64,000 bases of DNA, from assembly GCA_950097015.1 (NCBI GenBank), contig CATNEN010000001.1, positions 7,564,001 through 7,628,000 of the forward strand. Reading direction: 5' to 3'. The notes under the pieces were generated by a model. That model ran no database searches. It saw only the letters and a program-made list of their open reading frames with translations, and was not told the origin of the DNA. A program made the position numbers and the translations under genes. Shown piece by piece: positions 38,110 through 64,000 of the stretch. Origin of the DNA: Macrostomum hystrix (Eukaryota; Animalia; Platyhelminthes). Each line of letters starts with the position of its first letter. Position 1 is the first letter of the stretch.

Positions 38110-39964
38110 TTCTCAGTCACTGTCTTCCTCTCAGTTACTTTGTCTTCCTCTTAGTTACTTTGTCTTCCTCTCAGTTACTTTGTCTTCCTCTCAGTCACTT
38201 CGTCTTCCTCTCAGTCACTCCGTCTTCCTCTCAGTCACTCTCTCATACTCTTAGTCACTCCGTATTCCTCTCAGTCACTTTGTCTTCCTCTCAGTTACTC
38301 TCTTATTCTCAGTCACTCTCTTATTCTCAGTCACTCTTATTCTCAGTCACTCTCTTATTCTCAGTCACTCTTATTCTCAGTCACTCTCTTATTCTCAGTT
38401 ACTCTCTTATTCTCAGTCACTCTCTAATTCTCAGTCACTCTCTTATTCTCAGTCACTCTCTTATTCTCAGTCACTCTTATTCTCAGTCACTCTCTTATTC
38501 TCAGTCACTCTCTTATTCTCAGTCACTCTCTCATACTCTTAGTCACTCCGTATTCCTCTCAGTCACTTTGTCTTCCTCTCAGTTACTCTCTTATTCTCAG
38601 TCACTCTCTTATTCTCAGTCACTCTTATTCTCAGTCACTCTCTTATTCTCAGTCACTCTTATTCTCAGTCACTCTCTTATTCTCAGTTACTCTCTTATTC
38701 TCAGTCACTCTCTAATTCTCAGTCACTCTCTTATTCTCAGTCACTCTCTTATTCTCAGTCACTCTTATTCTCAGTCACTCTCTTATTCTCAGTCACTCTC
38801 TTATTCTCAGTCACTCTCTAATTCTCAGTCACTCTCTTATTCTCAGTCACTCTCTTATTCTCAGTCACTCTCTTATTCTCAGTCACTCTCTTATTCTCAG
38901 TCACTCTTATTCTCAGTCACTCTTATTCTCAGTCACTCTCTTATTCTCAGTCACTCTCTTATTCTCAGTCACTCTCTTATTCTCAGTCACTCTCTTATTC
39001 TCAGTCACTCTCTTATTCTCAGTCACTCTCTTATTCTCAGTCACTCTCTTATTCTCAGTCACTCTCTTATTCTCAGTCACTCTTATTCTCAGTCACTCTC
39101 TTATTCTCAGTCACTCTTATTCTCAGTCACTCTCTTATTCTCAGTCACTCTCTTATTCTCAGTCACTCTCTTATTCTCAGTCACTCTCTTATTCTCAGTC
39201 ACTCTCTTATTCTCAGTCACTCTCTTATTCTCAGTCACTCTCTTATTGTCAGTCACTCTCTTATTCTCAGTCACTCTTATTCTCAGTCACTCTCTTATTC
39301 TCAGTCACTCTTATTCTCAGTCACTCTCTTATTCTCAGTCACTCTCTTATTCTCAGTCACTCTCTTATTCTCAGTCACTCTCTTATTCTCAGTCACTCTC
39401 TAATTCTCAGTCACTCTCTTATTCTCAGTCACTCTCTTATTCTCAGTCACTCTCTTATTCTCAGTCACTCTCTTATTCTCAGTCACTCTTATTCTCAGTC
39501 ACTCTTATTCTCAGTCACTCTCTTATTCTCAGTCACTCTCTTATTCTCAGTCACTCTCTTATTCTCAGTCACTCTCATTTTCTCAGTCACTCTCTTATTC
39601 TCAGTCACTCTCTTATTCTCAGTCACTCTCTTATTCTCAGTCACTCTCTAATTCTCAGTCACTCTCTTATTCTCAGTCACTCTCTTATTCTCAGCCACTC
39701 TCTTATTCTCAGTCACTCTCTTATTCTCAGTTACTCTCTTATTCTCAGTCACTCTCTTATTCTCAGTCACTCTCTTATTCTCAGTCACTCTCTTATTCTC
39801 AGTCACTCTCTTATTCTCAGTCACTCTCTTATTCTCAGTCACTCTCTTATTCTCAGTTACTCTCTTATTCTCAGTCACTCTCTTTTTCTCAGTCACTCTC
39901 TTATTCTCAGTCACTCTCTTATTCTCAGTCACTTTTATTCTCAGTCACTCTCTTATTCTCAGTC
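38110..39964. repeat. 18-bp satellite, left arm
   Basis: (TTATTCTCAGTCACTCTC)n with 16-bp variants. Confidence 0.97.
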
Positions 39965-40078
39965 TTGACTTGACTTAGCGGCAGGGGGCCTCCATGACGG
40001 ACGCAGCGAGGAGGCGGCTGTTGCCGCCCATATCGCTAACCCCTGGCAGCCAGACGGCCTCCAGCGAGGCGGTGCCGC

Positions 40079-43000
40079 TCAGGGTGGTCCGTCGGTCGGT
40101 TCCGCCGCGCGATCTTCCTCGCCATAGGCTGGGAAGAAATCAGCTCGGCCGGTATCCCGGAGGAAGTGGGCGAGCTGAGGGATGTTCTCGGGCGAGCAGG
40201 CTTCGGCAAGAGTCGGTGCCGGCCCGAGGTGTTTTAGCCTAGCCCGGGTGAAGGCCGGGCAGTGGCAAATGAAATGCTCGGCGTTTTCACGGCCGGAGCA
40301 GCAGAAAGGACACGTTTCCTCAGGCACGTGGCCTTGGAGGTAGCGGTGTCTGGTGAAGCAGCCATGTCCCGAAAGGGCCATGGTGACTGCTCTCAGGTCT
40401 CTGCGGTTTAGCCTGAGTAAGGCCTTACGCAGGTTACTAGAGGGGGTTGGCACCGCAGCCCTGGACTGGCGACAGTTCAGGGTGCTGGACCACCTCCTCC
40501 GGTGCTGGGTCTCCATCCAGTGGTTGATGCTGGAGTTGACAACGGAGGCGGGGATCGGGGATTCCGGGCCCGGGCCCATCAGGGAGCTGGCTGCTCCAGC
40601 CTTTGCAAGCTCGTCCGCCATCTCATTCCCTGTGAGCCCGGCGTGCCCAGGGATCCACATCAGCTCCACCTTGTTAGACTGCGCCAAACCGTTTAACTGG
40701 GTGTTGCAGTCCAAGGTGGTTCTGGAGCGAGAGGTGCAGCGACTGAGGGCCTTAAGGGCTGCTTGACTGTCGGAGTGAAAAAAGATCCTCCGACCAGCCA
40801 GCTGCCTCTGGCGCAGCTCAGCCGCACAGAAGCTGATGGCGAGCATTTCGTTTTGGAAAACGCTTGAGCTCTTGCCACAGTGTTGGGAGTGGGTCCAGAG
40901 GACCTCGCCACCCGAGGCGACGCACACCCCGAATCCCGATTTACCGTTCATCAGGGAGCCGTCAGTGTAACAGTGGACTGCGGGGTCATCCCAGCAGTCC
41001 TTTACCTCATTACGAGGGAAGATGCTGACTTTGTACCTGTGGCTCCGGAGTAAAGTGGCCGGGGCCCCGTCCGAAAGGATGGTGAGCCCTCCGCACTCGC
41101 CCAGAGTTTTCAGGCAGAGGTCAGAGTGGGGCAGAAGGGAGCGCTTCGAGAAGGCTCGCGAATTCTGGAAGGATACACCCGCATCAAGGAGACGACGGGT
41201 GGACTTTGCCGCTTCCCCCTTAACAAAAATGTCAATGGGTGTAGCGTTGAGGAAAGCGTTCATGCCTTCAAAGGGAGTGGAGGGTGGGGCGCCCAGCGTC
41301 ATGCGACAGGCTCTGCCCTGCACCCTATAAAGCGCCTCCAGGTTTTTCTGGATGCTCATGGCACTGGCCCAGATGAGGCCAGCGTAAGCGACTGACGGTC
41401 TAATGATCGCCGTGTAAATCCACCAAAGGTTTTTGGGGGTTAGCCCCCAAGTGGTGCCCACGGCTCGCCTGACTTGCGCCAGAATGGCCAGGGCCCTCTT
41501 GGCCTTTGTGGTAATGTGCGGGGTCCAGTTAAGCCTATGGTCTAGCAGGATACCAAGGCACCGGACCTGCTTTTCCATGGCAATATTCTTGCCATAGAGA
41601 GTCAGAGGCTCAATGGTCCAGCGCAGCCTGCTGGTAAACATAACCGCAACGGTCTTGGACTCAGAGAGTCGGAGCCCGCATTGGTCCGCCCAGCGCACCG
41701 CCCTGTTGATAAAGCCCTGAATGAGGTCCCTGGTGGTTTCCGCCGAGGGGCCCGCGCAGATGGCGGTCACATCGTCGGCATATCCCACCTTCAGGACTGG
41801 GTCAGGCCGAGTGCTTTTTAGCAGCTCATCCATGACGAGATTCCACAGCAGTGGGGTGAGGACGCCACCTTGGGGCCCTCCTTTTAGGACAGGTGCCGAG
41901 AGCACCCTGCCTTCGAGGTGGGCCACCACGTGGCGATTCCGGATCATGTACATGACCCAACGGACGAGGTGGGGGTGAGTGGCCCTGGAAACCAGGGCCT
42001 TCTCAAAGGCTTCGAAAATAACGTTATCGAAGGCCCCCTCAATATCAAGGAAAACAGCCAGGGCAAAACCGCTGCCCAGCACTGCCTTCTCGAGAGTCTC
42101 CACAATGCAGTGGAGGGCGCTCTCCGTGGACCGGCCCGCCCGAAAGGCGTGCTGGTTTGGTGAGAGCGGGGCCCGCCCTAGCTCTACAGTAAGAAGGCGC
42201 CAGAGCACCAGTCTTTCCATGAGCTTGAGGCAGGTGGAAGTCAAGCTTATCGGGCGATAAGACTTGACCGAGCGATAGTCGCCTTTGGCGGGCTTCGGGA
42301 TGAAGACGACCCGGGCTTCATGCCACCGCGCTGGTACGTAGCCCAGCACGATGCAGGCCCGTAGAAGTCTGCAGAGGAGATGGAGGAAGCGGCCATTTTT
42401 AACCGCTTCATGCAGAAAGGCCGGATATATACCATCTGGCCCAGGTGCTTTAAAAGGATTGAATGACTTAGCCGCGCGAACGATGCGGTCATTCGTAACG
42501 AGTGACTGAGCCAGGCCCTGACCTCCACGCGAGTGGTCGTCTGGGCCGAAGTGCGCCGGTACACTCGGGAAGAAATGCCCTAGCATAAGCTCGAGCGTTT
42601 CCTCCGGGCGCTCAGTGATCGAGCCGTCCGGCTTTTTAATCGATGAGAGCTTGGAGAAGCGGTCGTTGGTGAGCGCCTTTACCACGCGGGCCGTGGGCCG
42701 CGAGCCCTCAAGCCCTTCGCAGTATTGTCGCCACTTGTCCGCTTTTGCCCTTCTGACCCGGCCCTTAAACTCATGGATGGCGCGAGTATAGGCCTCTTTG
42801 TCATCAGGGTCGTGCGAGGTTTTCAGCTTCCTCTGGAGAGCCTTAGCTCGGCGTCTTAGGACTCCGAGCTCGGGGTTCCACCAGGGGGCCGATTTTTTGC
42901 CTTTGTAGGCTTTGAGCGGGCAAGCCATTTCGTAGGCCTCTGTGATGGCGCCGCCCAGCAGGGCAGCCACTCCATCCAGGTCCTGCGTGGTTTCCATGGC

Positions 43001-43783
43001 CATGGAGGGGTCAGAATCCCGAAGGCCCTCATGCAGCTTTTGGCTGAACGCGGGCCAGTCGGTATTTCTGACATTACGCCTCCAAATAGGCTTTTGCTTC
43101 TTATCGGGGGTGCCGATGTTGAAACGGATGAAGCGGTGGTCCGAGAGCGAGCTTTCGGTCTCCCACACCTCCCACCCCAGCACCCTTGGGAGGATGCCGG
43201 GTGAGGCCAGGGTGACGTCAAGCACCTCAGCCCACCGCCCATTGTCGAAAGTGGGCGAGTTGCCCACATTGCAGAAGTTTAGAGGCGTGCCGCTGACGAA
43301 GGCCAGGAGCTCTTCGCCGCGGTCATTGATTTTTGAGCTACCCCAGTGGGTGTGATGCGAGTTTACATCTCCCGCGAGGAGCAGCTCGAAGTTTCGTGCC
43401 CTGGCGAATTCACAGAGGGCGACGAGGGTATCGCTAACCACGGGGGCGTCGCCTGCCAGGTAGGCGGATGCCACGAGGGTCAACTTGTTAGGCACAATGT
43501 GTGCAGATTGGATGACGCAGATGTCCCCGTTAGAGAGATCGGGTCTCATCCACGCATTTAAGGCTTTTGCGGCATAGATCAGTGATCTAGGGCGGACAGA
43601 GTCTGCCATGCAGAAGCAGTCATAGCCAGCAGGAGTGTTGCTTGGCTTGTTCTTTGATAGCCAGGGCTCCTGCACAAGTACAAGGCCCGGCATCATGCGC
43701 TCTGTCGTGCGCATCAGATTGACTGATGCTGCCACGCAGTGCTGGGTGTTAACTTGCAGACATGATATTCCGGGGATCATCAT
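40079..43783 (-). CDS. Retrotransposon ORF2: AP endonuclease, reverse transcriptase, RNase H, C-terminal Cys/His knuckle
   Basis: APE motifs (QVN, VQEPW, GDVNSHH, SDH); RT ([27 protein letters not shown]); RNase H ([26 protein letters not shown]); CPFC..EHFICHC. Confidence 0.97.
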
Positions 43784-43795
43784 GCAGGCAGAGGT

Positions 43796-45343
43796 CTACT
43801 TGGAGGGGGACCCAGCCAGAAGGCGGTCCTCCTCCTCCGGGTCGATGTCGGTAGCCATGGGCTCCTCCGTGCCCAGGCCCCGAGCCGGAGACGGGAACTC
43901 GACGGCGTCAGCCGCCCAGTCCCCGCCCCCGGCCCCGAGCCCAGGCCCAGAGTCGCCCTCAACTGGAGCCGACACCGCTCCCTGGGCCGTGGGAGGGGCG
44001 CTCGAAGGGCCCTGCTCGATGGAGCTGGGCACCTCTGAGGCCTCCCCCGTAGCCCTTGGTTGCGGCGCCTGCCCCGGTGGGCCACCGCGCATCTCAGCGC
44101 GCAGCTGGGCCATCTTGGCGGTTCGCACCACCTCGGAGGCCCGCTGGAGAAGGCCCCGGCGCTTTGTGACACGCGCGGGGCGACGCTCAGAGCTGCCAGC
44201 GATGGCACGCTCTGGCCTTTTTTGGCGGGACGACTGGGCCCTGCCCCCAGTCCCAGCCTTGGGGTCCGAGGACCCTTCATTGGCCGGTACGGTGGTGGGC
44301 CCGGTCTGACCTCGGGTTTTATCCGCCTCGAAGGCGAAGATTTTGGTCTTCCACAGACCAATGCAAATGTTGGCGCCATCTGGGTAGCGGCGTGTCCATT
44401 GCTCGGACAGGCCCAGAATGGCGGTGAAACCGGTGCCGTCGGGGCGCAGGATCGTGCGGTGCACGATCAGGCCCGCTGTCGGCAGCTCCCGGTTCATCGC
44501 GATGAGGCCCCTGCGGAGGTCCTCAGCGCTGGTGACGACACTTTTCGCCGGGACGAAGATACGGTGTCGCTTGGTCTTTGGTGGCTCGTTCTCCCGTAGG
44601 AACTCGAGGCCAGCCGCCCAGCTCTGCGTGGGCAGCAACTCGAGGAGCCGCCGCCCCGATTCCGCATCGCCGGGCCAGACGACGAAGCACGATTCCCTGG
44701 TAGCGCTTGCGCCGACCGCCAGGGGCTCGCCCTTCAGTTGAAGTTGCCACAACATAGCATCTATGTTGCGGCAAATGTCGCTGAGCTGTTCGCTGCTCAG
44801 CCTTTTCCCGTCTCTGCCGGTGATGATGACGGCAGGTTGCCTACGTGCGATGGCGGCGTAGGTAGCTTGTGGTCCCGGGCCCTGTCCGGTGGCGTCCCCA
44901 CCCTCGGGATCTGCGTCGGCGGTGGGCACAGGGCCCTCCGCCTCCGCTTCTCCTTCGGGCCGGGCAGCCGTCCGGATGGGCGCCGGGCCCTCCTTGGCCC
45001 GCGACCCTGGCCTCGGGGCGTCGTGGGCTCCGCCCCGTGCAGGAGCCTGGGCAGGAGGCACAAGGCCCCCCGCCCCAGCCCCCGCCCTAGGCAGAGCCCC
45101 TTCGGCCCCTCTGGCCTGGGCCTGGTCCTTGGTCAATGGAGCCGACGTGCCGTGGGCCAGCATGCGCCTACGGCGTTTTGCCGCTCCAGAGGTGGTGGAG
45201 CGCTTAGCGCCCCGGTCATCGCGCGAGTTGGGCAGCGCGGCATTTGTGGCGGTCGCGGGGCCAGCTAGCCCGGGCGCCGCAGCGTGTATGGCCTCAGGCA
45301 CCATGGTGTCCTCGGCCGGAGCAGTTGAAGGGCTAGAAGCCAT
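43796..45343 (-). CDS. Retrotransposon ORF1 (gag-like nucleic-acid-binding protein)
   Basis: Open ~515-codon frame directly upstream of ORF2 (first ATG at 45343); basic AKRRRR patch, TYAAIA motif, disordered termini, no CCHC knuckle. Confidence 0.85.
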   Translation of the reverse strand: MASSPSTAPAEDTMVPEAIHAAAPGLAGPATATNAALPNSRDDRGAKRSTTSGAAKRRRRMLAHGTSAPLTKDQAQARGAEGALPRAGAGAGGLVPPAQAPARGGAHDAPRPGSRAKEGPAPIRTAARPEGEAEAEGPVPTADADPEGGDATGQGPGPQATYAAIARRQPAVIITGRDGKRLSSEQLSDICRNIDAMLWQLQLKGEPLAVGASATRESCFVVWPGDAESGRRLLELLPTQSWAAGLEFLRENEPPKTKRHRIFVPAKSVVTSAEDLRRGLIAMNRELPTAGLIVHRTILRPDGTGFTAILGLSEQWTRRYPDGANICIGLWKTKIFAFEADKTRGQTGPTTVPANEGSSDPKAGTGGRAQSSRQKRPERAIAGSSERRPARVTKRRGLLQRASEVVRTAKMAQLRAEMRGGPPGQAPQPRATGEASEVPSSIEQGPSSAPPTAQGAVSAPVEGDSGPGLGAGGGDWAADAVEFPSPARGLGTEEPMATDIDPEEEDRLLAGSPSK

Positions 45344-45778
45344 TGAAAGCTGCAATGAAGAGAGGGGCTTCCTGTAGACACAGGCAGGAATAACCCGCTC
45401 AGCCGCGATCCCAAAACTGAGCGGGGGCAGCCAAAAAAGACAAGTTACAACCCGGGGTGGGATGCCAGGACCACCGGGAGGAACCGTAAGAGACCAGACT
45501 ACTCCCTGGCCAAGCGTCCATCAGCACGGTCAACACTGGGACATTGGAGGGTGCCATTGAGCCGGCGCCGAGGCCTGCGGGCTGGCCGCAAACCCTGTTA
45601 AGGTCAAAGGGTGACACCTGTCCCTCAGGGCCGTAGCCAGAGGTACCTGATCACGCACAGGTGCACGAAAATTGCGGACAAGCCACATACCCTGTTAAGG
45701 TCAAAGGGTGACACCTTTCCCTCCAGCCGGGGCTAGAGGTACCCAGTTTGGCCGGAGGCCCTGGATGGGTCATCCAGC

Positions 45779-46012
45779 GCTGTTGCCCATTCTGTCCGGC
45801 TGCCCTAGGGTCAGCCTTGAACACTCGCGGGACGTGTACCCATGGGTCAGCTGACGGGACAGCGTTGGAGGGATTCCTGCACCCGAAGGTACAGGTCTCC
45901 TTCCTGCCAGGCCTGCTCAAAAAACGGCTGCAGGTGTGAGGCATCGCAGACCAAAGCCCGTGGGCCTGGACTGACTCATATCTCACAGGCACTGTGTCCC
46001 GCCGGTGCGAGC
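45779..46012 (-). ncRNA. HDV-like self-cleaving ribozyme at the 5' end of the retrotransposon
   Basis: P1 GCUCGC/GCGAGU with G1-U; P2 CCCAU/AUGGG (+GCUG/CAGC); P3 GGG/CCC; L3 UACACGU; P1.1 AC/GU; P4 GGCUG-A-CCC/GGG-CAGCC; J4/2 CAGA; G1 coincides with the insertion junction. Confidence 0.88.
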
Positions 46013-49000
46013 CTTATTCTCAGTCACTCTCTTATTCTCAGTCACTCTCTTATTGTCAGTCACTCTCTTATTCTCAGTCACTCTCTTATTCTCAGTCACT
46101 CTCTTATTCTCAGTCACTCTCTTATTGTCAGTCACTCTCTTATTCTCAGTCACTCTCTTATTCCCAGTCACTCTCTTATTCTCAGTCACTCTCTTATTCT
46201 CAGTCACTCTCTTATTCTCAGTCACTCTCTTATTCTCAGTCACTCTCTTATTCTCAGTTACTCTCTTATTCTCAGTCACTCTCTTTTTCTCAGTCACTCT
46301 CTTATTCTCAGTCACTCTCTTATTCTCAGTCACTTTTATTCTCAGTCACTCTCTTATTCTCAGTCACTCTCTTATTCTCAGTCACTCTCTTATTCTCAGT
46401 CACTCTCTTATTCTCAGTCACTCTCTTATTCTCAGTCACTCTCTAATTCTCAGTCACTCTCTTATTCTCAGTCACTCTCTTATTCTCAGTCACTCTCTTA
46501 TTCTCAGTCACTCTCTTATTCTCAGTCACTCTCTTATTGTCAGTCACTCTCTTATTCTCAGTCACTCTCTTATTCTCAGTCACTCTCTTATTCTCAGTCA
46601 CTCTCTTATTGTCAGTCACTCTCTTATTCTCAGTCACTCTCTTATTCCCAGTCACTCTCTTATTCTCAGTCACTCTCTTATTCTCAGTCACTCTCTAATT
46701 CTCAGTCACTCTCTTATTCTCAGTTACTCTATTATTCTCAGTCACTCTCTTATTCTCAGTCACTCTCTTATTCTCAGTCACTCTCTTATTCTCAGTCACT
46801 CTCTTATTCTCAGTCACTCTCTTATTCTCAGTCACTCTCTAATTCTCAGTCACTCTCTTATTCTCAGTCACTCTCTAATTCTCAGTCACTCTCTTATTCT
46901 CAGTCACTCTCTTATTCTCAGTCACTCTCTAATTCTCAGTCACTCTCTTATTCTCAGTCACTCTCTTATTCTCAGTCACTCTCTTATTCTCAGTTACTCT
47001 CTTATTCTCAGTCACTCTCTTATTCTCAGTCACTCTCTTATTCTCAGTCACTCTCTTATTCTCAGTCACTCTCTTATTCTCAGTCACTTTTATTCTCAGT
47101 CACTCTCTTATTCTCAGTCACTCTCTTATTCTCAGTCACTCTCTTATTCTCAGTCACTTTTATTCTCAGTCACTCTCTTATTCTCAGTCACTCTCTTATT
47201 CTCAGTCACTCTCTTATTCTCAGTCACTCTCTTATTCTCAGTCACTCTCTTATTCTCAGTCACTCTCTTATTCTCAGTCACTCTCTTATTCTCAGTCACT
47301 CTCTTATTCTCAGTCACTCTCTTATTCTCAGTCACTCTCTAATTCTCAGTCACTCTCTTATTCTCAGTCACTCTCTTATTCTCAGTCACTCTCTTATTCT
47401 CAGTCACTCTCTTATTCTCAGTCACTCTCTAATTCTCAGTCACTCTCTTATTCTCAGTCACTCTTATTCTCAGTCACTCTCTTATTCTCAGTCACTCTCT
47501 TATTCTCAGTCACTCTCTAATTCTCAGTCACTCTCTTATTCTCAGTCACTCTCTTATTCTCAGTCACTCTCTTATTCTCAGTCACTCTCTTATTCTCAGT
47601 CACTCTCTTATTCTCAGTCACTCTCTTATTCTCAGTTACTCTCTTATTCTCAGTCACTCTCTTATTCTCAGTCACTCTCTTATTCTCAGTCACTCTCTTA
47701 TTCTCAGTCACTCTCTTATTCTCAGTCACTCTCTTATTCTCAGTCACTCTCTTATTGTCAGTCACTCTCTTATTCTCAGTCACTCTCTTATTCTCAGTCA
47801 CTCTCTTATTCCCAGTCACTCTCTTATTCTCAGTCACTCTCTTATTCTCAGTCACTCTCTAATTCTCAGTCACTCTCTTATTCTCAGTTACTCTATTATT
47901 CTCAGTCACTCTCTTATTCTCAGTCACTCTCTTATTCTCAGCCACTCTCTTATTCTCAGTCACTCTCTTATTCTCAGTCACTCTCTTATTCTCAGTCACT
48001 CTCTTATTCTCAGTCACTCTCTTATTCCCAGTCACTCTCTTATTCTCAGTCACTCTCTTATTCTCAGTCACTCTCTAATTCTCAGTCACTCTCTTATTCT
48101 CAGTTACTCTATTATTCTCAGTCACTCTCTTATTCTCAGTCACTCTCTTATTCTCAGCCACTCTCTTATTCTCAGTCACTCTCTTATTCTCAGTCACTCT
48201 CTTATTCTCAGTCACTCTCTTATTCTCAGCCACTCTCTTATTCTCAGTCACTCTCTTATTCTCAGTCACTCTCTTATTCTCAGTCACTCTCTTATTCTCA
48301 GTCACTCTTATTCTCAGTCACTCTCTTATTCTCAGTCACTCTTATTCTCAGTCACTCTCTTATTCTCAGTCACTCTCTTATTCTCAGTCACTCTCTTATT
48401 CTCAGTCACTCTCTTATTCTCAGTCACTCTCTAATTCTCAGTCACTCTCTTATTCTCAGTCACTCTCTTATTCTCAGTCACTCTCTTATTCTCAGTCACT
48501 CTCTTATTCTCAGTCACTCTTATTCTCAGTCACTCTTATTCTCAGTCACTCTCTTATTCTCAGTCACTCTCTTATTCTCAGTCACTCTCTTATTCTCAGT
48601 CACTCTCATTTTCTCAGTCACTCTCTTATTCTCAGTCACTCTCTTATTCTCAGTCACTCTCTTATTCTCAGTCACTCTCTAATTCTCAGTCACTCTCTTA
48701 TTCTCAGTCACTCTCTTATTCTCAGCCACTCTCTTATTCTCAGTCACTCTCTTATTCTCAGTTACTCTCTTATTCTCAGTCACTCTCTTATTCTCAGTCA
48801 CTCTCTTATTCTCAGTCACTCTCTTATTCTCAGTCACTCTCTTATTCTCAGTCACTCTCTTATTCTCAGTCACTCTCTTATTCTCAGTTACTCTCTTATT
48901 CTCAGTCACTCTCTTTTTCTCAGTCACTCTCTTATTCTCAGTCACTCTCTTATTCTCAGTCACTTTTATTCTCAGTCACTCTCTTATTCTCAGTCACTCT

Positions 49001-51115
49001 CTTATTCTCAGTTACTCTCTTATTCTCAGTCACTCTCTTTTTCTCAGTCACTCTCTTATTCTCAGTCACTCTCTTATTCTCAGTCACTTTTATTCTCAGT
49101 CACTCTCTTATTCTCAGTCACTCTCTTATTCTCAGTCACTCTCTTATTCTCAGTCACTCTCTTATTCTCAGTCACTCTCTTATTCTCAGTCACTCTCTAA
49201 TTCTCAGTCACTCTCTTATTCTCAGTCACTCTCTTATTCTCAGTCACTCTCTTATTCTCAGTCACTCTCTTATTCTCAGTCACTCTCTTATTGTCAGTCA
49301 CTCTCTTATTCTCAGTCACTCTCTTATTCTCAGTCACTCTCTTATTCTCAGTCACTCTCTTATTGTCAGTCACTCTCTTATTCTCAGTCACTCTCTTATT
49401 CCCAGTCACTCTCTTATTCTCAGTCACTCTCTTATTCTCAGTCACTCTCTAATTCTCAGTCACTCTCTTATTCTCAGTTACTCTATTATTCTCAGTCACT
49501 CTCTTATTCTCAGTCACTCTCTTATTCTCAGTCACTCTCTTATTCTCAGTCACTCTCTTATTCTCAGTCACTCTCTTATTCTCAGTCACTCTCTAATTCT
49601 CAGTCACTCTCTTATTCTCAGTCACTCTCTAATTCTCAGTCACTCTCTTATTCTCAGTCACTCTCTTATTCTCAGTCACTCTCTAATTCTCAGTCACTCT
49701 CTTATTCTCAGTCACTCTCTTATTCTCAGTCACTCTCTTATTCTCAGTTACTCTCTTATTCTCAGTCACTCTCTTATTCTCAGTCACTCTCTTATTCTCA
49801 GTCACTCTCTTATTCTCAGTCACTCTCTTATTCTCAGTCACTCTCTTATTCTCAGTCACTCTCTTATTCTCAGTCACTCTCTTATTCTCAGTCACTCTCT
49901 TATTCTCAGTTACTCTCTTATTCTCAGTCACTCTCTTTTTCTCAGTCACTCTCTTATTCTCAGTCACTCTCTTATTCTCAGTCACTTTTATTCTCAGTCA
50001 CTCTCTTATTCTCAGTCACTCTCTTATTCTCAGTTACTCTCTTATTCTCAGTCACTCTCTTTTTCTCAGTCACTCTCTTATTCTCAGTCACTCTCTTATT
50101 CTCAGTCACTTTTATTCTCAGTCACTCTCTTATTCTCAGTCACTCTCTTATTCTCAGTCACTCTCTTATTCTCAGTCACTCTCTTATTCTCAGTCACTCT
50201 CTTATTCTCAGTCACTCTCTAATTCTCAGTCACTCTCTTATTCTCAGTCACTCTCTTATTCTCAGTCACTCTCTTATTCTCAGTCACTCTCTTATTCTCA
50301 GTCACTCTCTTATTGTCAGTCACTCTCTTATTCTCAGTCACTCTCTTATTCTCAGTCACTCTCTTATTCTCAGTCACTCTCTTATTGTCAGTCACTCTCT
50401 TATTCTCAGTCACTCTCTTATTCCCAGTCACTCTCTTATTCTCAGTCACTCTCTTATTCTCAGTCACTCTCTAATTCTCAGTCACTCTCTTATTCTCAGT
50501 TACTCTATTATTCTCAGTCACTCTCTTATTCTCAGTCACTCTCTTATTCTCAGTCACTCTCTTATTCTCAGTCACTCTCTTATTCTCAGTCACTCTCTTA
50601 TTCTCAGTCACTCTCTAATTCTCAGTCACTCTCTTATTCTCAGTCACTCTCTAATTCTCAGTCACTCTCTTATTCTCAGTCACTCTCTTATTCTCAGTCA
50701 CTCTCTAATTCTCAGTCACTCTCTTATTCTCAGTCACTCTCTTATTCTCAGTCACTCTCTTATTCTCAGTTACTCTCTTATTCTCAGTCACTCTCTTATT
50801 CTCAGTCACTCTCTTATTCTCAGTCACTCTCTTATTCTCAGTCACTCTCTTATTCTCAGTCACTTTTATTCTCAGTCACTCTCTTATTCTCAGTCACTCT
50901 CTTATTCTCAGTCACTCTCTTATTCTCAGTCACTTTTATTCTCAGTCACTCTTATTCTCAGTCACTCTTATTCTCAGTCACTCTCTTATTCTCAGTCACT
51001 CTCTTATTCTCAGTCACTCTCTTATTCTCAGTCACTCTCATTTTCTCAGTCACTCTCTTATTCTCAGTCACTCTCTTATTCTCAGTCACTCTCTTATTCT
51101 CAGTCACTCTCTCTT
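46013..51115. repeat. 18-bp satellite, right arm, with higher-order blocks
   Basis: (TTATTCTCAGTCACTCTC)n; identical variant strings at 46443, 49197 and 50219. Confidence 0.97.
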
Positions 51116-51549
51116 CCACTCAGAAGTCAAAATCAGCCCAACGATTTACGGAGCAGTCATTCAAAGAACAGAGTTAAATAAGCTGGACTGCTTGGCGCTT
51201 ATCATCCCATGATACGAATCCCCTGTATCCACGGGTAGGTTCAGCCTCGATGATGGGGATTACTTTTTAATCTCAGCGACCCCAGGGAATAACTTATATA
51301 GTCTCGTTGAAAATAGATAAGTCCCAAGCGTTTCACTCCAATATTTTTCCTCTTGCTCATTCGAGCATAACAGTTCAGGCCCTACTTTACCTAAAAAATC
51401 TTTCTTTTCACTGAAGGAAGTCCATCCAAATATGCTTATGGTGTTTGCGATAATACGAGCAAATCTTTATTTAATGATTTTTGAAGGCATGGGTCCGTAT
51501 ATTCTGGTCCGACATGGACTTCTGAATCTACTCCATGACATCTTCAAAC

Positions 51550-52187
<638 letters not shown>

Positions 52188-54306: not shown

Positions 54307-57300
54307 TTAAAACTTTGTCTCGCCCTCAAATCCGGCATTGTCTAGGCCGGTGGGGCCATTGTGCGGTGACAGAGAGGCTCCGCTTGACAAGTCCTGCGGC
54401 AGGCCAAAGCGAACATGACCATTAGAGGCTTCACTATCAATGCCAGAGATGGGATGGCTCATGTCTGTGACAATGACGCCCTCGGCCAAGGCTGGAAGGC
54501 TGCTCACTGGTTGAAGCGACCGGGTCTGAAGAATGTTACCAGCCAGCAGCTCGCTAGAGTTGCGTCGCCAGCTCTCCTTCCGGATGCGCCGACGGCGATC
54601 GCGAGCCAACTCGGTTGAGCTCATTCGCCTCGACTTGGCGAGGGTGCTGTGAGAGCCGTGGCCTCCGTGAGATGGTCCTGCAGCTGCGGCACTGTTCAGG
54701 TGAGAATGTCGACCTCATGATTGTTAGACGATTAGATTGTTACACTCAAACTACTCAGGGAAAGTATTTAGGCCTTTGAAACCATCAGAATTTGGATACA
54801 TATTGTTCATGACAAGTCCAAAGTCAAGCTATCAAACAATAAATAACAGTAGAGAGACATGGTGTATTTCAAATACCCGCATATTTATTTTTCTGTCTCC
54901 TGAAGTATTAAACCAATTGACATGAAAATCCAGTACACTGGCTAGAATTTTCCGCTCTATCCGATGAAACAACTTCCAGAATAAAAAAACATCGGCAATG
55001 GTGGTATCGTCGAGATATTCAAGATTCTCGTCGGGGTGTCTGATGGCAAAAATGGATTCGCCTAGGGGTTTAAACACAGCAATGTTAGTTGTCCTTGTCA
55101 CCAGGGTCTCCAACAAAAATAGCTGAACATCTCGACGATGGTGACGCCTGACGGCTTTGAAAGTTGGTTTATCGTAAATGGCGGACAATTTAGACTCAGA
55201 TGGTGGACTTTTACGAAAATCGGTCATTCGGTTTGGAAGCATCGTGAAGTAGGCAGTGGGTAATATATAGAAATATATTCCCGGGAGGGAAGATAGCGTT
55301 GTCTTTCTAATGTTAACCAAACGGTGACTCGCTTTCACAAACTCTATACTTTCGACCTTGTGAAACTACCCCAACCTTGTAATATTTAACTACCTGTGGT
55401 ATTATTATAGAAGGAATCATCGAACAATTTAGAGTAGAAAGAAAACTTTCAACCAAGTCTACGTTATAAAAGTGACTGACTTATCGGAGGTGGCGCCATC
55501 GCCAGCTGATCCGCCAGCATTTCCTGCCGCATCCAGCTGACTGTCCTCTTCGCCGTCATGCATTTTGGCTTCGTCCTTGAATTTTGACAAGGAGTTGAAT
55601 TAATTAGATAGAATACAACGACTTCACTTGAGACTAGAATGCTGAGTACGCAAATAGGCTCACCTGAACCAGCTCGTTATAGAAGGTGGAGAGAGCGTGA
55701 AGGACAGCGTCGTGGACGGTGACGAAGAGGCCCTCCTCGCTCCTCTTGGCGTAGAAGTTGGCCTTCCTAAGCTGGGATCTGACCAGCCAGGTGCAGCCGC
55801 TCAGGTAGATCTCCACGCCGATCTTGCTGAACTCGTCCACGATTTGGGACAGCAGGCGAATGCCCACGGCGTCGGTGAAGGCGCAGGCTGACAGGTCCAG
55901 GATGATGCAGAAGATGTTCACAGTAGAGGCTATCTCCTTATCGGAGTGATAAGCCACCGACTCAAAGTGCGCGTGCTTCTCCAGCACCGGCTGCGTGCCC
56001 TGCGCCACCACGCGGGCCTCCGCCACCTGCGCAAGAGACCGGCTGCGTTTCTAGGAAACTGCAGTGAACTGACCTGACACCTCTCTGCATCGCCTGACAC
56101 CTCTCTGCTTCGCCTGACACCTCTCTACCTCGCCTGACACCTCTCTGCCTCGTCTGAAACCTCTTTACCTCGCCTGAAATCTCTCCGCCTTGCCTGACAC
56201 CTTAATGCCTCGCCTGACACCTCTCTACTTCGCCTGACACCACTCTGCCTCTTCTGACACCTCACCGCCTCGCCTGATACCTCAATTTCTAGTCTCTATC
56301 TTAGTAATATTTTTTCAGACTTATCAGCGAATTGCTTTGACATAACTAATAGCTTTCTAAACACCCTAAGATTGTCATAACAAGAAATCAGCAATGAAAA
56401 ACTGAAAAAAAATTCAACGCACCGGATGGCTGCCCTCCTCAGTGACGGTCTCCAGAATCTGGCGAACACCTTCAACCTGAAGCATGTCAGTGCGCAGGTC
56501 AACTTCGCCGTGACGCCTTCCTTCTCGTTTCGCGCGCGCTTTGGCTTTGGCCAGAATTCGCTTCGGATTCAGGGCCACCTGGCGGTAGAGCCGATTGCGA
56601 TAGTTCTCAGCGCTGGCAAAGTACAGCGAGCCCTCGAATTTGAAGATCTTGATGCCAGGAATCTGTTCGGCCTGAATAATTGAGTTTTTATTGTTAAGAG
56701 TTTTGCATGTTTACTACTTTAAGTAGCTTAACCTGTACAAAATATAACAGTAAGCTAAAGATAAAGTGTGTTTCTTACGATTCTCAATTAATGATAAAAT
56801 TAACGAACAAATTAGCCCTGTTTAACAAGCAGACCAACAGAATACCAGTATTTAGATGTGTGTGTCAAAAGTCACTCAGTCTATGATTTTTCTGTATAAT
56901 AAGTTATAGTCCAAAACGGATCTACAAACATGTCTAAAAATATATTAAAGTTCTTAAATAGAATTTATAGACACAAAATTTAGTAAATTTTAATTTCTAT
57001 ACATACCAATTATACGCTCATAAAATGTTTTACAAATTTATTTATATTATAGAATCGTAAACACTACAGTTGGTCTAGTTAGTCTCACTTCCCAGCAACA
57101 GCATCTTAAGCTCTTGAATTTTGAGACAGTCAGACTAACACAGTAAAAGCAAGTGTCTAGCTAAAATCGAAGCCTACCTTCTTGTGCTTTTTAATATTCC
57201 TGTAGATGTCAGTGTTTGGCAGTCGGCCCAACAGGTAAGCCTTGGGCGCCTGGGTGCGAAAGATCACAGTAGCCAATGAGAAGACGACTCCGATGAGTAG

Positions 57301-60300
57301 TCCGATGGGCAAGTCGAGACCGAGAATGGCGCCCAATGTGACAAGAAAGATCGTCTGCCATAAAGTTCAAATTTTCTTTGTAGACGATTTCGAGTAGATA
57401 AATATAAAACATTTCCAGGTAGAAATACTTACGAAGTCGTATCTGTTAGTTCGCCACAGTCGTGGCAGCTGTTCCACTTGCAGGATCATGTTTTTTAGGT
57501 TTACGATGATAATTGCTGATAAAACGCACTGAAAATTTGAGTTAAAAAAACCTCTTTAACTTAAATTTTGACTCAAAAAACGTTTTAAAGAACATTTAAA
57601 GGTCGTGGCTTAGTGTTAAGAGCGTCGAACTCACGACTTTAATTCGGATGTTTGATTCACGACTCTACTGGAACAATTTGTGTCCGTTAGCAAGACACTT
57701 AAACTCTGCATTGCTTCAGTTCAACCAGCTGTTAAATGGGTGCCAGCGTCAGCTGGGGTAATTGAGAGTGGGAGTGGAATCCCACCAGTCCCCAGTCCAT
57801 GGACTGAACAGCCACATGCAGCTATCAGATGCGCCGCGCAATAGCTGCGGCTGTGCTACGGCAATATAAAGGCTTCAAATCTAGCCAAGTTAGGTAATCC
57901 ATTATTATTACTATTATTATTATCACCAATGAATATTATGCCATTAGAAATTTATATGGGGCCACATGGGGTCAATGAATAGATGATCAAAATAAATAAG
58001 CGCACTGTGTCACCTTTGGCACAGGTGCAAATTCAGGTGCAATCACGAGTATAGCAATCAGTGTAATGACTGCAGCGTACAGCGAGTAGACTAAAGTTTT
58101 GCCTTTTAAAGACTCGTGTAGCGATGTGCAGGTGATGGCAGCCGCCGAGACGAAGGTGCTAAACCAGCACATACCAATGTTCACGGCACCGTAGGCGATC
58201 ATCTCCTGATTGGGGTCGATTTCGTAGCCGTTGCGTAGGGCGAAGGTTTTCGATAGCGAGACGGACAGCGCGTAGGAGATGACGCCGAGAACGATGCCGT
58301 TCACAATGATCCCAGAGCCTGAGGTAAAGTGTTCAATCTTAGGAGATCTCGGCGCCTCGAACCTTGACATGGTGCAATGAGAGTTGGCAATTTGAGCAGA
58401 GTAGATAAGATGTGACAAGATTACATAACTAATCAGATTAGAGAGTGACAAGATTGCATAACTTATATCAGATCAGAGAGAGACAAGATTACATAATTAA
58501 TCCGATTAGAGAGTGACAAGATTGCATAACTAATCAGATAGAGAGGGACAAGACTGCATAACTAATTAGATAAGAGAGTGACAAGATTGCATAACTAATT
58601 AGATAAGAGAGTGACAAGATTACATAACTAATCAGATAAGAGAGGGACAAGATTACATAACTAATTAGATAAGAGAGGGACAAGACTGCATAACTAATTA
58701 GATAAGAGAGGGACAAGATTACATAACTAATTAGATAAGAGAGTGACAAGATTACATAACTAATCAGATCAGAGAGGGACAAGACTGCATAACTAATTAG
58801 ATAAGAGAGTGACAAGATTACATAACTAATCAAATCAGAGAGGGACAAGACTGCATAACTAATTAGATAAGAGAGTGACAAGATTACATAACTAATCAGA
58901 TCAGAGAGGGACAAGACTGCATAACTAATTAGATAAGAGAGTGACAAGATTACATAACTAATCAGATAAGAGAGGGACAAGATTGAATAACTAATTAGAT
59001 AAGAGAGTGACAAGATTACATAACTAATCAGATCAGAGAGGGACAAGATTGCATAACTAATTAGATAAGAGAGTGACAAGATTACATAACTAATCAGATA
59101 AGAGAGTGACAAGATTACATAACAAATCAGATCAGAGAGGGACAAGACTGTATAACTAATTAGATAAGAGAGGGACAAGATTACATAACTAATCAGATCA
59201 GAGAGGGACAAGACTGCATAACTAATTAGATAAGAGAGTGACAAGATTACATAACTAATCAGATAAGAGAGGGACAAGATTGAATAACTAATTAGATAAG
59301 AGAGTGACAAGATTACATAACTAATCAGATAAGAGAGGGACAAGATTACATAACTAATTAGATAAGAGAGGGACAAGACTGCATAACTAATTAGATAAGA
59401 GAGTGACAAGATTGCATAACTAATTAGATAAGAGAGTGACAAGACTGCATAACTAATCAGATAAGAGAGGGACAAGATTACATAACTAATTAGATAAGAG
59501 AGTGACTAGATTACATAACTAATCAGATCAGAGAGTGACAAGATTTTGCTTACCCTTTGCGAATTTCTCCAACAGACGCAATTTTCAATGTAGTCTCCCA
59601 GAAGAGAAACTTTGATAACAGCAGGCTGGCAATGAGCTGCAAATTATTACAAATTTAGATATGTCAACAAATTGACCAATTATATGTACATGCAGATGGC
59701 AAAAGCTTACTCACCACAATGATATCAATTGGGATTGGCACCCTGATGTGTTTGATGCACCTCTCGTTAACGATCTTGATCGATAACAAGATCAGAAAGA
59801 AAAATACAAAAACCAAGATTGTGGGCACGTTCACCTTTGACGCAAGGATTTCTTTTACGGCCTCGATGAAGTACTGAAAATAAGGGACAGAATACGAGCG
59901 CTTAATTTTCCATTGGTTTCAAAATCATACGAGCACTTCTTACAGTCTACCAAGTCTACTTCTCACCGTCTACCACGTCTACTTCTTAAAGTCTACTAAG
60001 TCTACTTCTTACAGTCTACCGAGTCTACTTCTCACAGTCTTCTAAGTCTACATCCCACAGTCTACCAAGTCTACTTCTCACAGTTTACCAAGTCTACTTC
60101 TCACAGTTTACCAAATCTACTTCTAACTGTCTACCAAGCCCAACTCTCACAGTCTACCAAGTCTACTTCCCACCGTCTACCAAGTCTACTTCCCACCGTC
60201 TACCAAGTCTACTTCTCACCGTCTACCAAGTCTACTTCTCACCGTCTACCAAATCTACTTCTAACTGTCCACCAAGCCTAACTCTCACAGTCTACCAAGT

Positions 60301-63300
60301 CTACTTCTCACAGTCTACCAAGTCTTCCCACCGTCTACCAAGTCTTCCCACCGTCTACCAAGTCTACTTCCCTCCGTCTACCAAGTCTTCCCACCGTCTA
60401 CCAAGTCTTCCCACCGTCTACCAAGTCTTCCCACCGTCTACCAAGTCTTCCCACCGTCTACCAAGTCTACTTCCCACCGTCTACCAAGTCTACTTCTCAC
60501 AGAGTACCATCAATAACTATCATAATCTACCAACGCTACAACTGTATTACAAACTGCACAAATAGTTCAAAGTTAAACAAACCAGAAAGAATTTTCCATT
60601 GCCATTGATAGTTGGTATTGGGGCGCCCAGCATGTTGCCCAGCTGGCTGCTGACAATGTGCAGTGCCGCTCCGCAGGTAAAAGCGCTATTAATTGGATCA
60701 GACAGGTAGATGGTGAGGAAACCGAATTGAAACAGGCCAAGCACCAGCTGCAGGGCACCCGCAATCATTGTGATTGTCAGGGCGATTCTTGCATTGGCGT
60801 CATCTGGGGTGGTGCATGGCACTGAAATGAAGGCGCATCCAAAGAATTTGTAAAGTTCTGTTCAGTCCGCGGACAGGGCAAAGCAATACCCGTCAAAGTT
60901 TCTGCACCTAGCCAATAAATAAAAATAATGATTGATTACACCTGCGCTAATTGGGTCAGATGTGCAGCGGACGGTACAGCCGCAGCTATAGCGCAGCTCA
61001 TCTGAAGGATACGTACGGCTGTTCAGTCCATGGACTGGAAACTCGGGGGACGAGACACCAACTCTCAATTATCCCAGCTAATGCTGGTACTTATTTAAGG
61101 GACTAAAACCCCATAGACTAGGCTACAACCCCCTAGACTAGCTAGAACATCCCTAGATTGGGCAAAAACCACCTTGACTACGCTACAACCCCCTAGATTA
61201 AGCTACAGCCCCGTAGATTAAGCTAACAACCCCTAGATTAAGCTACAGCCCCGTAGATTAAGTTAACAAGCCCTAGATTAAGCTACAACCCTGTAGATTA
61301 AGCTACAGCCCTCTAGATTAAGCTACAGCCCCGTAGATTAAGCTAACAACCCCTAGATTAAGCTACAGCCCCCTAGATTAAGCTACAGCCCCCTAGATTA
61401 AGCTACAGCCCCGTAGATTAAGCTAACAACCCCTAGATTAAGCTACAACCCCCTAGATGAAGCTAACAACCCCTAGATTAAGCTAACCCCTAGATTAAGC
61501 TACAGCCCCGTAGATTAAGCTAACAACCCCTAGATTAAGCTACAGCCCCGTAGATTAAGCTAACAACCCCTAGATTAAGCTACAGCCCCGTAGATTAAGC
61601 TAACAACCCCTAGATTAAGCTACAGCCCCGTAGATTAAGCTAACAACCCCTAGATTAAGCTACAACCCCCTAGATTAAGCTACAACCCCCTAGATTAAGC
61701 TACAACCCCGTAGATTAAGCTACAACCCCTAGATTAAGCTACAACCCCCTAGATTAAGCTACAACCCCTAGATTAAGCTACAACCCCCTAGATTAAGCTA
61801 CAACCCCGTAGATTAAGCTAACAACCCTAGATTAAGCTACAACCCCCTAGATTAAGCTAACAACCCCTAGATTAAGCTAAAACCCCCTAGATTAAGCTAC
61901 AACCCGCTAGATTAAGCTACAACCCCTTCTGATCCAGATACAGTTAAGCTTTATTGAAAATAAATACAGTTCACTGTTAGCAAACACACTACTCACCATT
62001 CGTAGCCGCAGTAGTATTAGCGCTAGTAAATGTCGTCGCGCTAGTCCAAGCCACTGTGGGTTCGCTAGTCGACCAGGCGGTGTAGTTTGAGTCCGCAGTT
62101 GAGTTCGGTGTCAAACAGAGGCCGACGCGGTTGGGATAGACCTGATCTACGCCGGCCCTCACTGCCTCGCCAACCAGTAGGGATATCGCGCCCTGATTGG
62201 CTGGTTGATTTTGTTTGAAGAGAAATCATTATCCTTTTCAGATCATCTCATAATATTCTTTATATTTTCTTGCCCTACAAATTTTCTGTAATCGAACCTT
62301 AGTTCATTGATAATCTCACTCTACTTCTCAGAAAATATAACTCCACTTCTCAGATAATGTAACTCTACTTCTCAGATAATGTCGCTCTACTTCACAGATA
62401 ATGTCGCTCTACTTCACAGATAATGTCGCTCTACTTCACAGATAATCTCACTCGACTTCTTAGATAATCTCACTCTACTTCACAGATAATGTCACTCTAC
62501 TTCACAGATAATTTCGCTCTACTTCACAGATAATCTCACTCGACTTCTTAGATAATCTCACTCCACTTCACAGATAATGTCACTCCACTTCACAGATAAT
62601 CTCACTCTACTTCTCAGATAATCTAACTCCACTTCACAGATAATCTAACTCCACTTCTCTCAGATAATCTTCTTGACAATAACTAGACTCCACATCAGTG
62701 AAACAAAGACTCACTCATATTAAGGTGGTTGGATGTGCCAAAAATAAAGTAGATAATCATGGCAAAGAATGCGGAGTAGAATCCACTCTGCGGTCTGAGA
62801 TTGGCCAGCAGAGCGTAGGCAATGGCTGAAATTTAAATTCAAGTAAAAATCTGTTTATAAATTTAGAAGTGTGAATTTTTTTCCTAAATTAAATTCATTT
62901 TTCAACACATATCGGCTACCTTATAAGTACAACTTCTCATCCCTTTCAGATTCAGTATCATCCGATTAAAAAAACTGCAAATCAAACTATAGAGTTTTGC
63001 AGGGAATTTTTTTCTTCACAAAAACACCATTCGCATAAACTACTCGCTATGAAAGTTAGTAGTAAAGTGAGGAAATTATTGCATCCCAAATTATGAAAAC
63101 GCAATTTAAAGGCTCAGCATTGCAGAACTCACACTGAGGAATGAGGAACAGACCCACGCTAATTCCGGATAACAGGTCGTAGGGTCCGTATTCGCGCAGG
63201 TCGTAGTTAAGCAGCACCTTCACAAATGGAAACAGCCGGGTGATGATGCCCAGAGCGATGACACCCTTGCCCTTCACCTCCTTGTTAGCCCGACGTTCGT

Positions 63301-63789: not shown

Positions 63790-64000
63790 GGCCAGTCATA
63801 CTGAATGACCAATAATAATATATGACCAATCATACTGAATAACCAATATTAATATATGACCAATCATACTGAATGAACAATTATAATGAATGACCAATCA
63901 TACTGAATGACCAGTCAAACTGAATGACCAGTCAAACTGAATGACCAATAATAATATATGACCAATCATACTGAATGACCAATCATACTGAATGACCAAA
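63790..64000. repeat. ~17-bp minisatellite running off the window end
   Basis: (GACCAATCATACTGAAT)n. Confidence 0.85.

Follow-up and report, generated by a model that had tools for sequence, protein, structure and literature searches.

The window, meaning the whole stretch of 64,000 nucleotides that was analysed, contains an 18-bp satellite with the unit AGAATAAGAGAGTGACTG, which stops at 39964 and resumes at 46013. Between these two points lies an intact non-LTR retrotransposon, whose features are listed in Table 1. Read on the minus strand, the upstream array ends ...AGAATAAG at 46013, and unique sequence starts from G46012. In the element, a 5' UTR about 660 nt long precedes two open reading frames. 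No Pfam domain was found in ORF1, and this frame is intact in many genomic copies. The domain matches in ORF2 had E-values of 3e-17 (Exo_endo_phos_2), 2.4e-28 (RVT_1) and 1.9e-13 (RNase_H). The closest named relatives of ORF2 were Macrostomum lignano proteins, with 56-73% identity over part of the protein, and more relatives, with 42-62% identity, were found in Logan and ENA contigs of other samples. The M. lignano matches point to a Macrostomum-type flatworm as the host.

We searched a genome of 220 Mb in 42 contigs for further copies of the element. The 3' tails of copies L073-L091 and of the window copy were short AAGTC/AAGT repeats, not poly(A). About one third of the first 30 copies inspected sat inside short tandem repeats or satellites, and repeat or satellite flanks were recorded for L002, L009, L010, L013, L017, L020, L021, L030 and the window copy. 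These locations may reflect a target preference or merely a satellite-rich genome.

Beyond 5.1 kb of satellite, about 9.6 kb upstream of the element, lies an SLC26-type gene. The preliminary description had placed such a gene on the same strand, and it is real, with STAS (55634-56026) and Sulfate_transp (57987-58451) domains on the minus strand. Different satellites were observed around its exons, at 51549-52146, 56073-56283, 58403-59545, 59935-60500, 61103-61926, 62309-62670 and 63792-63999. Read-through from this gene into the element is a possibility.

Table 1. Features of the element, its flanks and the predicted ribozyme. Element position p equals 46013 minus the coordinate, on the minus strand; paired strands share a line.
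Feature	Coordinates	Element nt	Strand	Sequence or remark
Non-LTR retrotransposon, intact	39965-46012		minus	6,048 bp; read from flanking satellite arrays, ORFs, domains and 3' tail
Upstream flank, 18-bp satellite	46013-51112		none	same array as 38189-39964 beyond the element's other end
Predicted ribozyme	46012 to 45779	1-234	minus	
P1, 5' strand	46012-46007	1-6	minus	GCUCGC; predicted cleavage 5' of G46012 (element nt 1)
Linker after P1		7-9	minus	ACC, 3 nt
J1/2 (P1.2) closing stem, 9 bp	46003-45995 with 45861-45853	10-18 with 152-160	minus	GGCGGGACA with UGUCCCGUC
J1/2 interior	45994-45862	19-151	minus	133 nt; peripheral domain
J1/2 hairpin	45895-45876		minus	CCUGUACC-UUCG-GGUGCAGG
P2 extension	45851-45848 with 45782-45779	162-165 with 231-234	minus	GCUG with CAGC
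P2	45846-45842 with 45790-45786	167-171 with 223-227	minus	CCCAU with AUGGG
P3	45841-45839 with 45831-45829	172-174 with 182-184	minus	GGG with CCC
L3	45838-45832	175-181	minus	UACACGU, 7 nt; enclosed by P3
P1, 3' strand	45828-45823	185-190	minus	GCGAGU; 6 bp with the 5' strand, including G1.U190
P1.1	45837-45836 with 45822-45821	176-177 with 191-192	minus	AC (L3 positions 2-3) with GU
P4 hairpin	45820-45795	193-218	minus	
J4/2		219-222	minus	CAGA; candidate catalytic C at 45794 (C219)
97-bp tandem monomer	45575-45743		minus	about 1.7 copies, from self-matches; in the 5' UTR
ORF1	43796-45355		minus	519 codons as listed in the ORF list; first ATG at 45343
ORF2	40079-43783		minus	1,234 aa; APE-type endonuclease, reverse transcriptase and RNase H domains
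3' tail	39965-39977		minus	AAGTCAAGTCAA(G), from the tail/flank reading; most other copies end AAGTCAAGTAAGTCAA(G)

The first nucleotide of the element and its copies

G46012 had been taken as the first base of the element in the preliminary description. The results agreed with this assignment, as the satellite breaks off there and 50 copies at unrelated sites start at the same G. The first 313 nt of the element were present at at least 40 places in the genome, and a covariance model of the 73-nt core found at least 150 genomic copies. Among the core matches listed, 93 scored the same as the window's copy (108.5 bits), and only near-identical copies were among them. Every full-length 5' end inspected (51 of 51) began with GCTCGC at the equivalent of G46012, and the 30-45 nt upstream of G1 were unrelated among these 51 ends.

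The boundary was also read from target-site duplications (TSDs). In 15 of the 17 copies readable at both ends, a TSD of 11-14 bp directly adjoined G1, and the remaining two carried 1 or 6 extra bases. The apparent duplication of the window copy, (G)ACTGAGAATAAG, is ambiguous because its target is the periodic 18-bp array, and it is the other copies that fix the boundary. In addition, contigs from four other public runs, which are not on record as RNA, broke exactly at 46012 and carried three different flanks. A low-depth contig in run X4 joined 45623 to 45912, with 288 nt skipped and 34 other letters between them; this contig probably stems from a related copy or a rearranged one.

The predicted HDV-like fold

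All pairings listed in the preliminary description were found on the minus strand at the coordinates it had given. All helices and joining segments that make up the HDV fold follow one another in the canonical 5'-to-3' order (P1, P2, P3, P1.1, P4) when the descriptor is anchored at nt 1. Several HDV hallmarks were present: P1 is closed by a G1.U pair, the first base of J4/2 is a C, and L3 carries U at position 1 and CG at positions 5-6. Within the P2 region, a bulged A separates the GCUG strand of the extension from the P2 5' strand, and CAA lies between AUGGG and CAGC.

We calculated folding energies for the parts of this structure. The closing stem of J1/2 reached -15.1 kcal/mol as a duplex in isolation, the J1/2 interior alone had an MFE of -55.8 kcal/mol, and the duplex energies were -10.5 kcal/mol for P2 with its extension and -8.2 kcal/mol for P1. 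The two nested, pseudoknot-free halves folded at -94.3 and -95.7 kcal/mol, compared with an unconstrained MFE of -101.8 kcal/mol. On these model energies, the double pseudoknot is energetically competitive once the crossing helix (P2 or P1) is added.

The preliminary description had suggested fitting an HDV descriptor, and our own descriptor matched at 46012 on the minus strand. This lax descriptor comprised a 6-bp P1, a J1/2 of up to 200 nt, a 5-bp P2, a 3-bp P3, an L3 of 5-8 nt, a 2-bp P1.1, any 4-bp hairpin as P4, and a C separated from the P2 3' strand by 2-4 nt; the closing stem of J1/2 (9 bp) and the extension of P2 were ignored. Five of the 128,000 sites in the window matched, 46012 among them. 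The other four matches (+7555, +12174, +53732 and -37768) were A/U-rich, none of them combined G1.U with a G/C-only P3, and we read them as chance. At random sites with the dinucleotide make-up of the 5' UTR, 65 of 400,000 matched the descriptor (about 1.6e-4); G1.U was also present in 4 of 400,000 (1e-5), and G1.U together with a G/C-only P3 in 2 of 400,000 (about 5e-6). The chance of a fit exactly at the first base of the element is thus roughly 1e-4 to 5e-6, with the closing stem and the P2 extension left uncounted.

The curated Rfam models gave a different result. The HDV-family models (RF00094, RF00622, RF02682 and relatives) did not reach gathering score anywhere in the window, and no Rfam match was obtained at E up to 10 over 45600-46150, so the check by HDV-like covariance models proposed in the preliminary description failed to recover the fold. 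The missing match is likely due to the 155-160-nt J1/2 insert between P1 and P2, because a glocal covariance model would penalise this insert heavily.

Genome-wide, RF00094 had no match, and the matches of RF00622 were confined to short ribozyme-like sites elsewhere, none of which scored above 34.3 bits (cut-off 35). Among these CPEB3-like sites were G000:C1:21386521-21386593 (L051, 34.3 bits), G000:C38:8568484-8568574 (L052, 30.3 bits) and G000:C38:33832107-33832192 (L053, 27.3 bits), and their L3 read UUCACGU or UUCACGC. These sites probably represent further HDV-like ribozymes in the genome. The covariance model of the window's 73-nt core did not recognise them, and the exact core pattern had no match in metagenome contigs.

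We then compared the core directly with known consensus sequences. The Rfam CPEB3 consensus reads GCG-UUCACGU-CGC-GGCCCCU-GU...CGAA, and the corresponding segments of the predicted ribozyme read GGG-UACACGU-CCC-GCGAGU-GU...CAGA. The two share six of seven L3 positions, the GU after P1' and a 3-bp G/C P3. The one L3 base that differs from the CPEB3 consensus, A176, can pair with U192, which would give a second P1.1 pair. The mammalian CPEB3 ribozyme (RF00622), in contrast, is intronic and not retrotransposon-borne, and its J4/2 is CGAA where the predicted ribozyme has CAGA. The departures of the predicted ribozyme from the HDV/CPEB3 consensus are this J4/2 and the one P1.1 pair that is A-U. The AC/GU P1.1 had been described as a compensatory variant, which holds as a comparison with HDV but not within these LINEs, where the pair is invariant. 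The L3 consensus of F. prausnitzii, UCUaCGU, also agrees with the window's UACACGU in having U first and CG at positions 5-6.

Conservation of the core and a shared 5' module

The first 240 nt were compared among 22 distinct sequences, drawn from five LINE families (subfamilies of the window element and four others). The predicted catalytic segments were taken as the P1 5' strand, the stretch from the P2 extension through P1.1, and the stretch from J4/2 through the P2 extension. The results showed that 2 of the 53 positions in the catalytic segments varied, both in L3 (positions 4 and 7), whereas 30 of the 133 positions in the J1/2 interior varied and several indels of 1-3 nt occurred there as well (catalytic segments versus J1/2 interior, Fisher p = 0.0012). 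A minor allele carried by at least three distinct sequences was found at 17 J1/2 sites and at no core site. P4 varied at 3 of 26 positions: one change fell in a bulge, one turned a G-C pair into G.U, and one replaced a U-A pair by a U.U mismatch. The closing stem with its linkers varied at 2 of 22. In the closing stem, eight of the nine pairs never varied and one pair was broken in 2 of the 22 sequences. G1.U190, P1, P1.1, P2, the P2 extension, J4/2 including C45794, and the C and G of L3 were invariant in all 22 sequences.

The preliminary description had proposed checking whether other full-length copies start at GCTCGC and covary in their helices. The shared start was borne out by all 51 ends. 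P1, P2, P3 and P1.1 never varied, and no pair was changed on both sides in the 22 distinct sequences. The core is invariant, and therefore the pair count speaks neither for nor against the pairs. The only pair to occur in three forms (A-U, G.U and G-C) lies in the J1/2 hairpin. In contigs from other runs, variants were found at 13 J1/2 sites and at three P4 sites (one low-depth contig), with none in P1, P2, P3, L3, P1.1 or J4/2. A coding explanation for the conserved block (the open reading frame at 45651-45992) was excluded by 1-nt indels upstream in the same frame.

The first ~438 nt of the element (45575-46012) form a 5' module consisting of the predicted ribozyme, a short spacer and the 97-bp monomers, and this module was 91-94% identical across the five LINE families. 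The families were A (L060), B (L061/L063), C (L064/L066), D (L050/L067) and, as the fifth, the window element. Compared with the window element, ORF2 was 61% identical in A, 60% in B, 60% in C and 73% in D, and ORF1 was 35-48% identical; pairwise comparisons among the families gave 60-75% for ORF2 and 33-50% for ORF1. The J1/2 interior drifts freely, and therefore the similarity of the module does not reflect vertical inheritance since the families split. Module variants were also mixed across families: U181C with A202C occurred in D and B, A212U in A and B, and C9U in B and C, and two family-B copies carried different module variants. These sequence comparisons support well the view that the 5' module has been exchanged recently and repeatedly among at least five LINE families.

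The monomers varied from about 1.7 to 7 copies among copies and families (for example L050:1019-1779, L060, L061 and L064). Each monomer contains AGGTGTCACCCTTTGACCT, which can be read as an imperfect inverted pair of AGGTCA-like half-sites. Tandem monomers in the 5' UTR of a LINE are typical of promoters, and the 97-bp monomers may be a promoter or enhancer. The earlier suggestion that the element has no need of a promoter and relies on read-through transcription was left unsupported, as monomers of variable number follow the predicted ribozyme. Copies L058 and L062, of families A and B, begin at a homologous point (L058:1871 and L062:1869) that lies shortly after the monomer array and precedes the ORF1 ATG by about 50 nt. 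A second start site at this point was rejected: no ribozyme fits there, and 11 further copies ran through it, were truncated elsewhere or gave no usable match. The starts of L058 and L062 are probably ordinary 5' truncations.

Interpretation and relation to known LINE ribozymes

R2, L1Tc, RTE and Baggins elements are established cases of LINEs with an HDV-like ribozyme at the 5' end. Our full-text literature searches found no paper that describes such ribozymes in Macrostomum or, apart from planarian R2, in LINEs of flatworms.

Beside the published R2 ribozymes, the size of the predicted ribozyme is in no way exceptional. The J1/2 of R2 ribozymes spans 216-498 nt in silkmoths, and the separation of P1 and P1' ranges from 23 to more than 700 nt; P1 comprises 6-7 bp, P2 no fewer than 5 bp, and P4 varies greatly (PMC3774820). 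Rigid conservation is limited to the catalytic C and four other positions, and the C and G of L3 are conserved (PMC3774820). The window element resembles R2 of insects, the planarian Schmidtea and others in having a ribozyme (here predicted) at the 5' end, a long and poorly conserved J1/2, a P1 and a P2 within the size limits just given and a P4 that varies. R2, however, is specific to 28S rDNA, has only one ORF and a restriction-like endonuclease, and is transcribed together with rRNA, and its ribozyme trims the element out of the co-transcript (PMC3774820), whereas the window element has many insertion sites, an APE endonuclease and two ORFs.

In layout, the predicted ribozyme follows the architecture of the drz-Agam-2 family from mosquito RTE elements: its linkers are 3 nt and 1 nt long, its P1.2 domain is stable, and its P2 has 5+4 bp. 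The features shared with that family are short linkers, a stable base-paired J1/2 (P1.2) and an extended P2, a combination ("pinch") that activates the core up to about 1000-fold (PMC4908430). The drz-Agam-2 ribozymes differ in LINE clade and sequence, and their P2 has 12 bp, compared with the 5+4 bp and internal loop found here.

L1Tc of the ingi clade (L1TcRz in Pr77, Trypanosoma cruzi) is likewise a LINE that is dispersed without site specificity, encodes APE, RT and RNase H, and is flanked by TSDs of about 12 bp; an HDV-like ribozyme lies at its very first nucleotides and is cleaved at +1 (PMC3185411, PMC6765202). Its promoter and its ribozyme lie together in one 5' end (PMC3383444). L1TcRz has 77 nt, in contrast to the 234 nt found here with a structured J1/2 of about 155 nt. 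The hosts also differ (a kinetoplastid and a flatworm), and the window element has a separate ORF1 and a promoter that is only putative.

We consider it probable, at about 0.8, that element nt 1-234 are an HDV-like self-cleaving ribozyme with a CPEB3-like core, a large structured J1/2 and an extended P2. The preliminary description had claimed a complete HDV-like fold with its cut at the 5' end of the LINE. The anatomy, the chance estimate, the terminus and the conservation favour this claim. On the other side stand the lack of an Rfam match and of covariation, the failure of the core model to recognise the CPEB3-like sites of the genome, and the departures from consensus in J4/2 and P1.1, and the cleavage itself is predicted.

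Transcription may enter the element from upstream, whether from the satellite, from a host gene or from a start site driven by the element's own monomers. An active ribozyme would then cut 5' of G1 and remove all foreign upstream RNA, and the cut would leave an uncapped 5'-OH end. Target-primed reverse transcription would then copy the RNA up to this end, and full-length daughters would start at the same G. We propose that the terminus is uniform and free of extra 5' bases because the 5'-OH RNA is reverse-transcribed to its end.

Alternatively, the fixed 5' end could be the start site of an internal promoter residing in the first bases, the 97-bp monomers or both, and the HDV-like drawing would be coincidental. 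Transcription of many LINEs starts at a defined +1 set by an internal promoter. The tandem monomers of variable number in the 5' UTR point in this direction, as do the missing Rfam match and covariation, and a shared terminus with a conserved 5' region would fit a fixed-start promoter equally well. However, a coincidental fit at this one site has a chance of only about 1e-4 to 5e-6, and the conserved segments are the predicted catalytic strands, with the 133 nt between them drifting freely. The untemplated extra 5' G that capped LINE RNAs sometimes leave was found in 0 of the 17 readable copies, which speaks weakly against a capped start. Moreover, a promoter and a ribozyme are compatible, as in L1Tc (PMC3383444). 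We therefore regard a coincidental drawing over a promoter start as unlikely. A double pseudoknot that is real but non-catalytic, serving as a 5' structure that binds proteins, helps to initiate translation or stabilises the RNA, would accord with the IRES-like role proposed for retrotransposon HDV-like ribozymes (PMC6765202) and with the departures from the HDV/CPEB3 consensus in J4/2 (CAGA) and P1.1 (A-U plus C-G), but it seems very unlikely, as a structural role leaves the start of P1 at exactly nt 1 in every copy unexplained, R2 ribozymes themselves vary widely outside the catalytic C and four positions (PMC3774820), and the candidate catalytic C and the C and G of L3 are invariant here.

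With the self-cleaving ribozyme as the preferred reading, the 5' module might act as a dual unit, in which the monomers would drive or boost transcription and the ribozyme would restore the exact, cassette-bearing 5' end wherever transcription starts. This dual promoter and ribozyme function is a conjecture, which we hold tentatively and at well below even odds. If it is true, a promoter-carrying 5' end would be inherited intact.

These findings would add a young, high-copy group of APE/RT/RNase H LINEs from a free-living flatworm to the LINEs predicted to be headed by a ribozyme. With at least 150 copies and one predicted cut site, the group offers a natural test case for a large P1.2-type domain with natural variants. 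The module has passed between LINE families that share only 35-73% identity in their proteins, and if the monomers are a promoter, it would show how a promoter-bearing 5' end survives retrotransposition.
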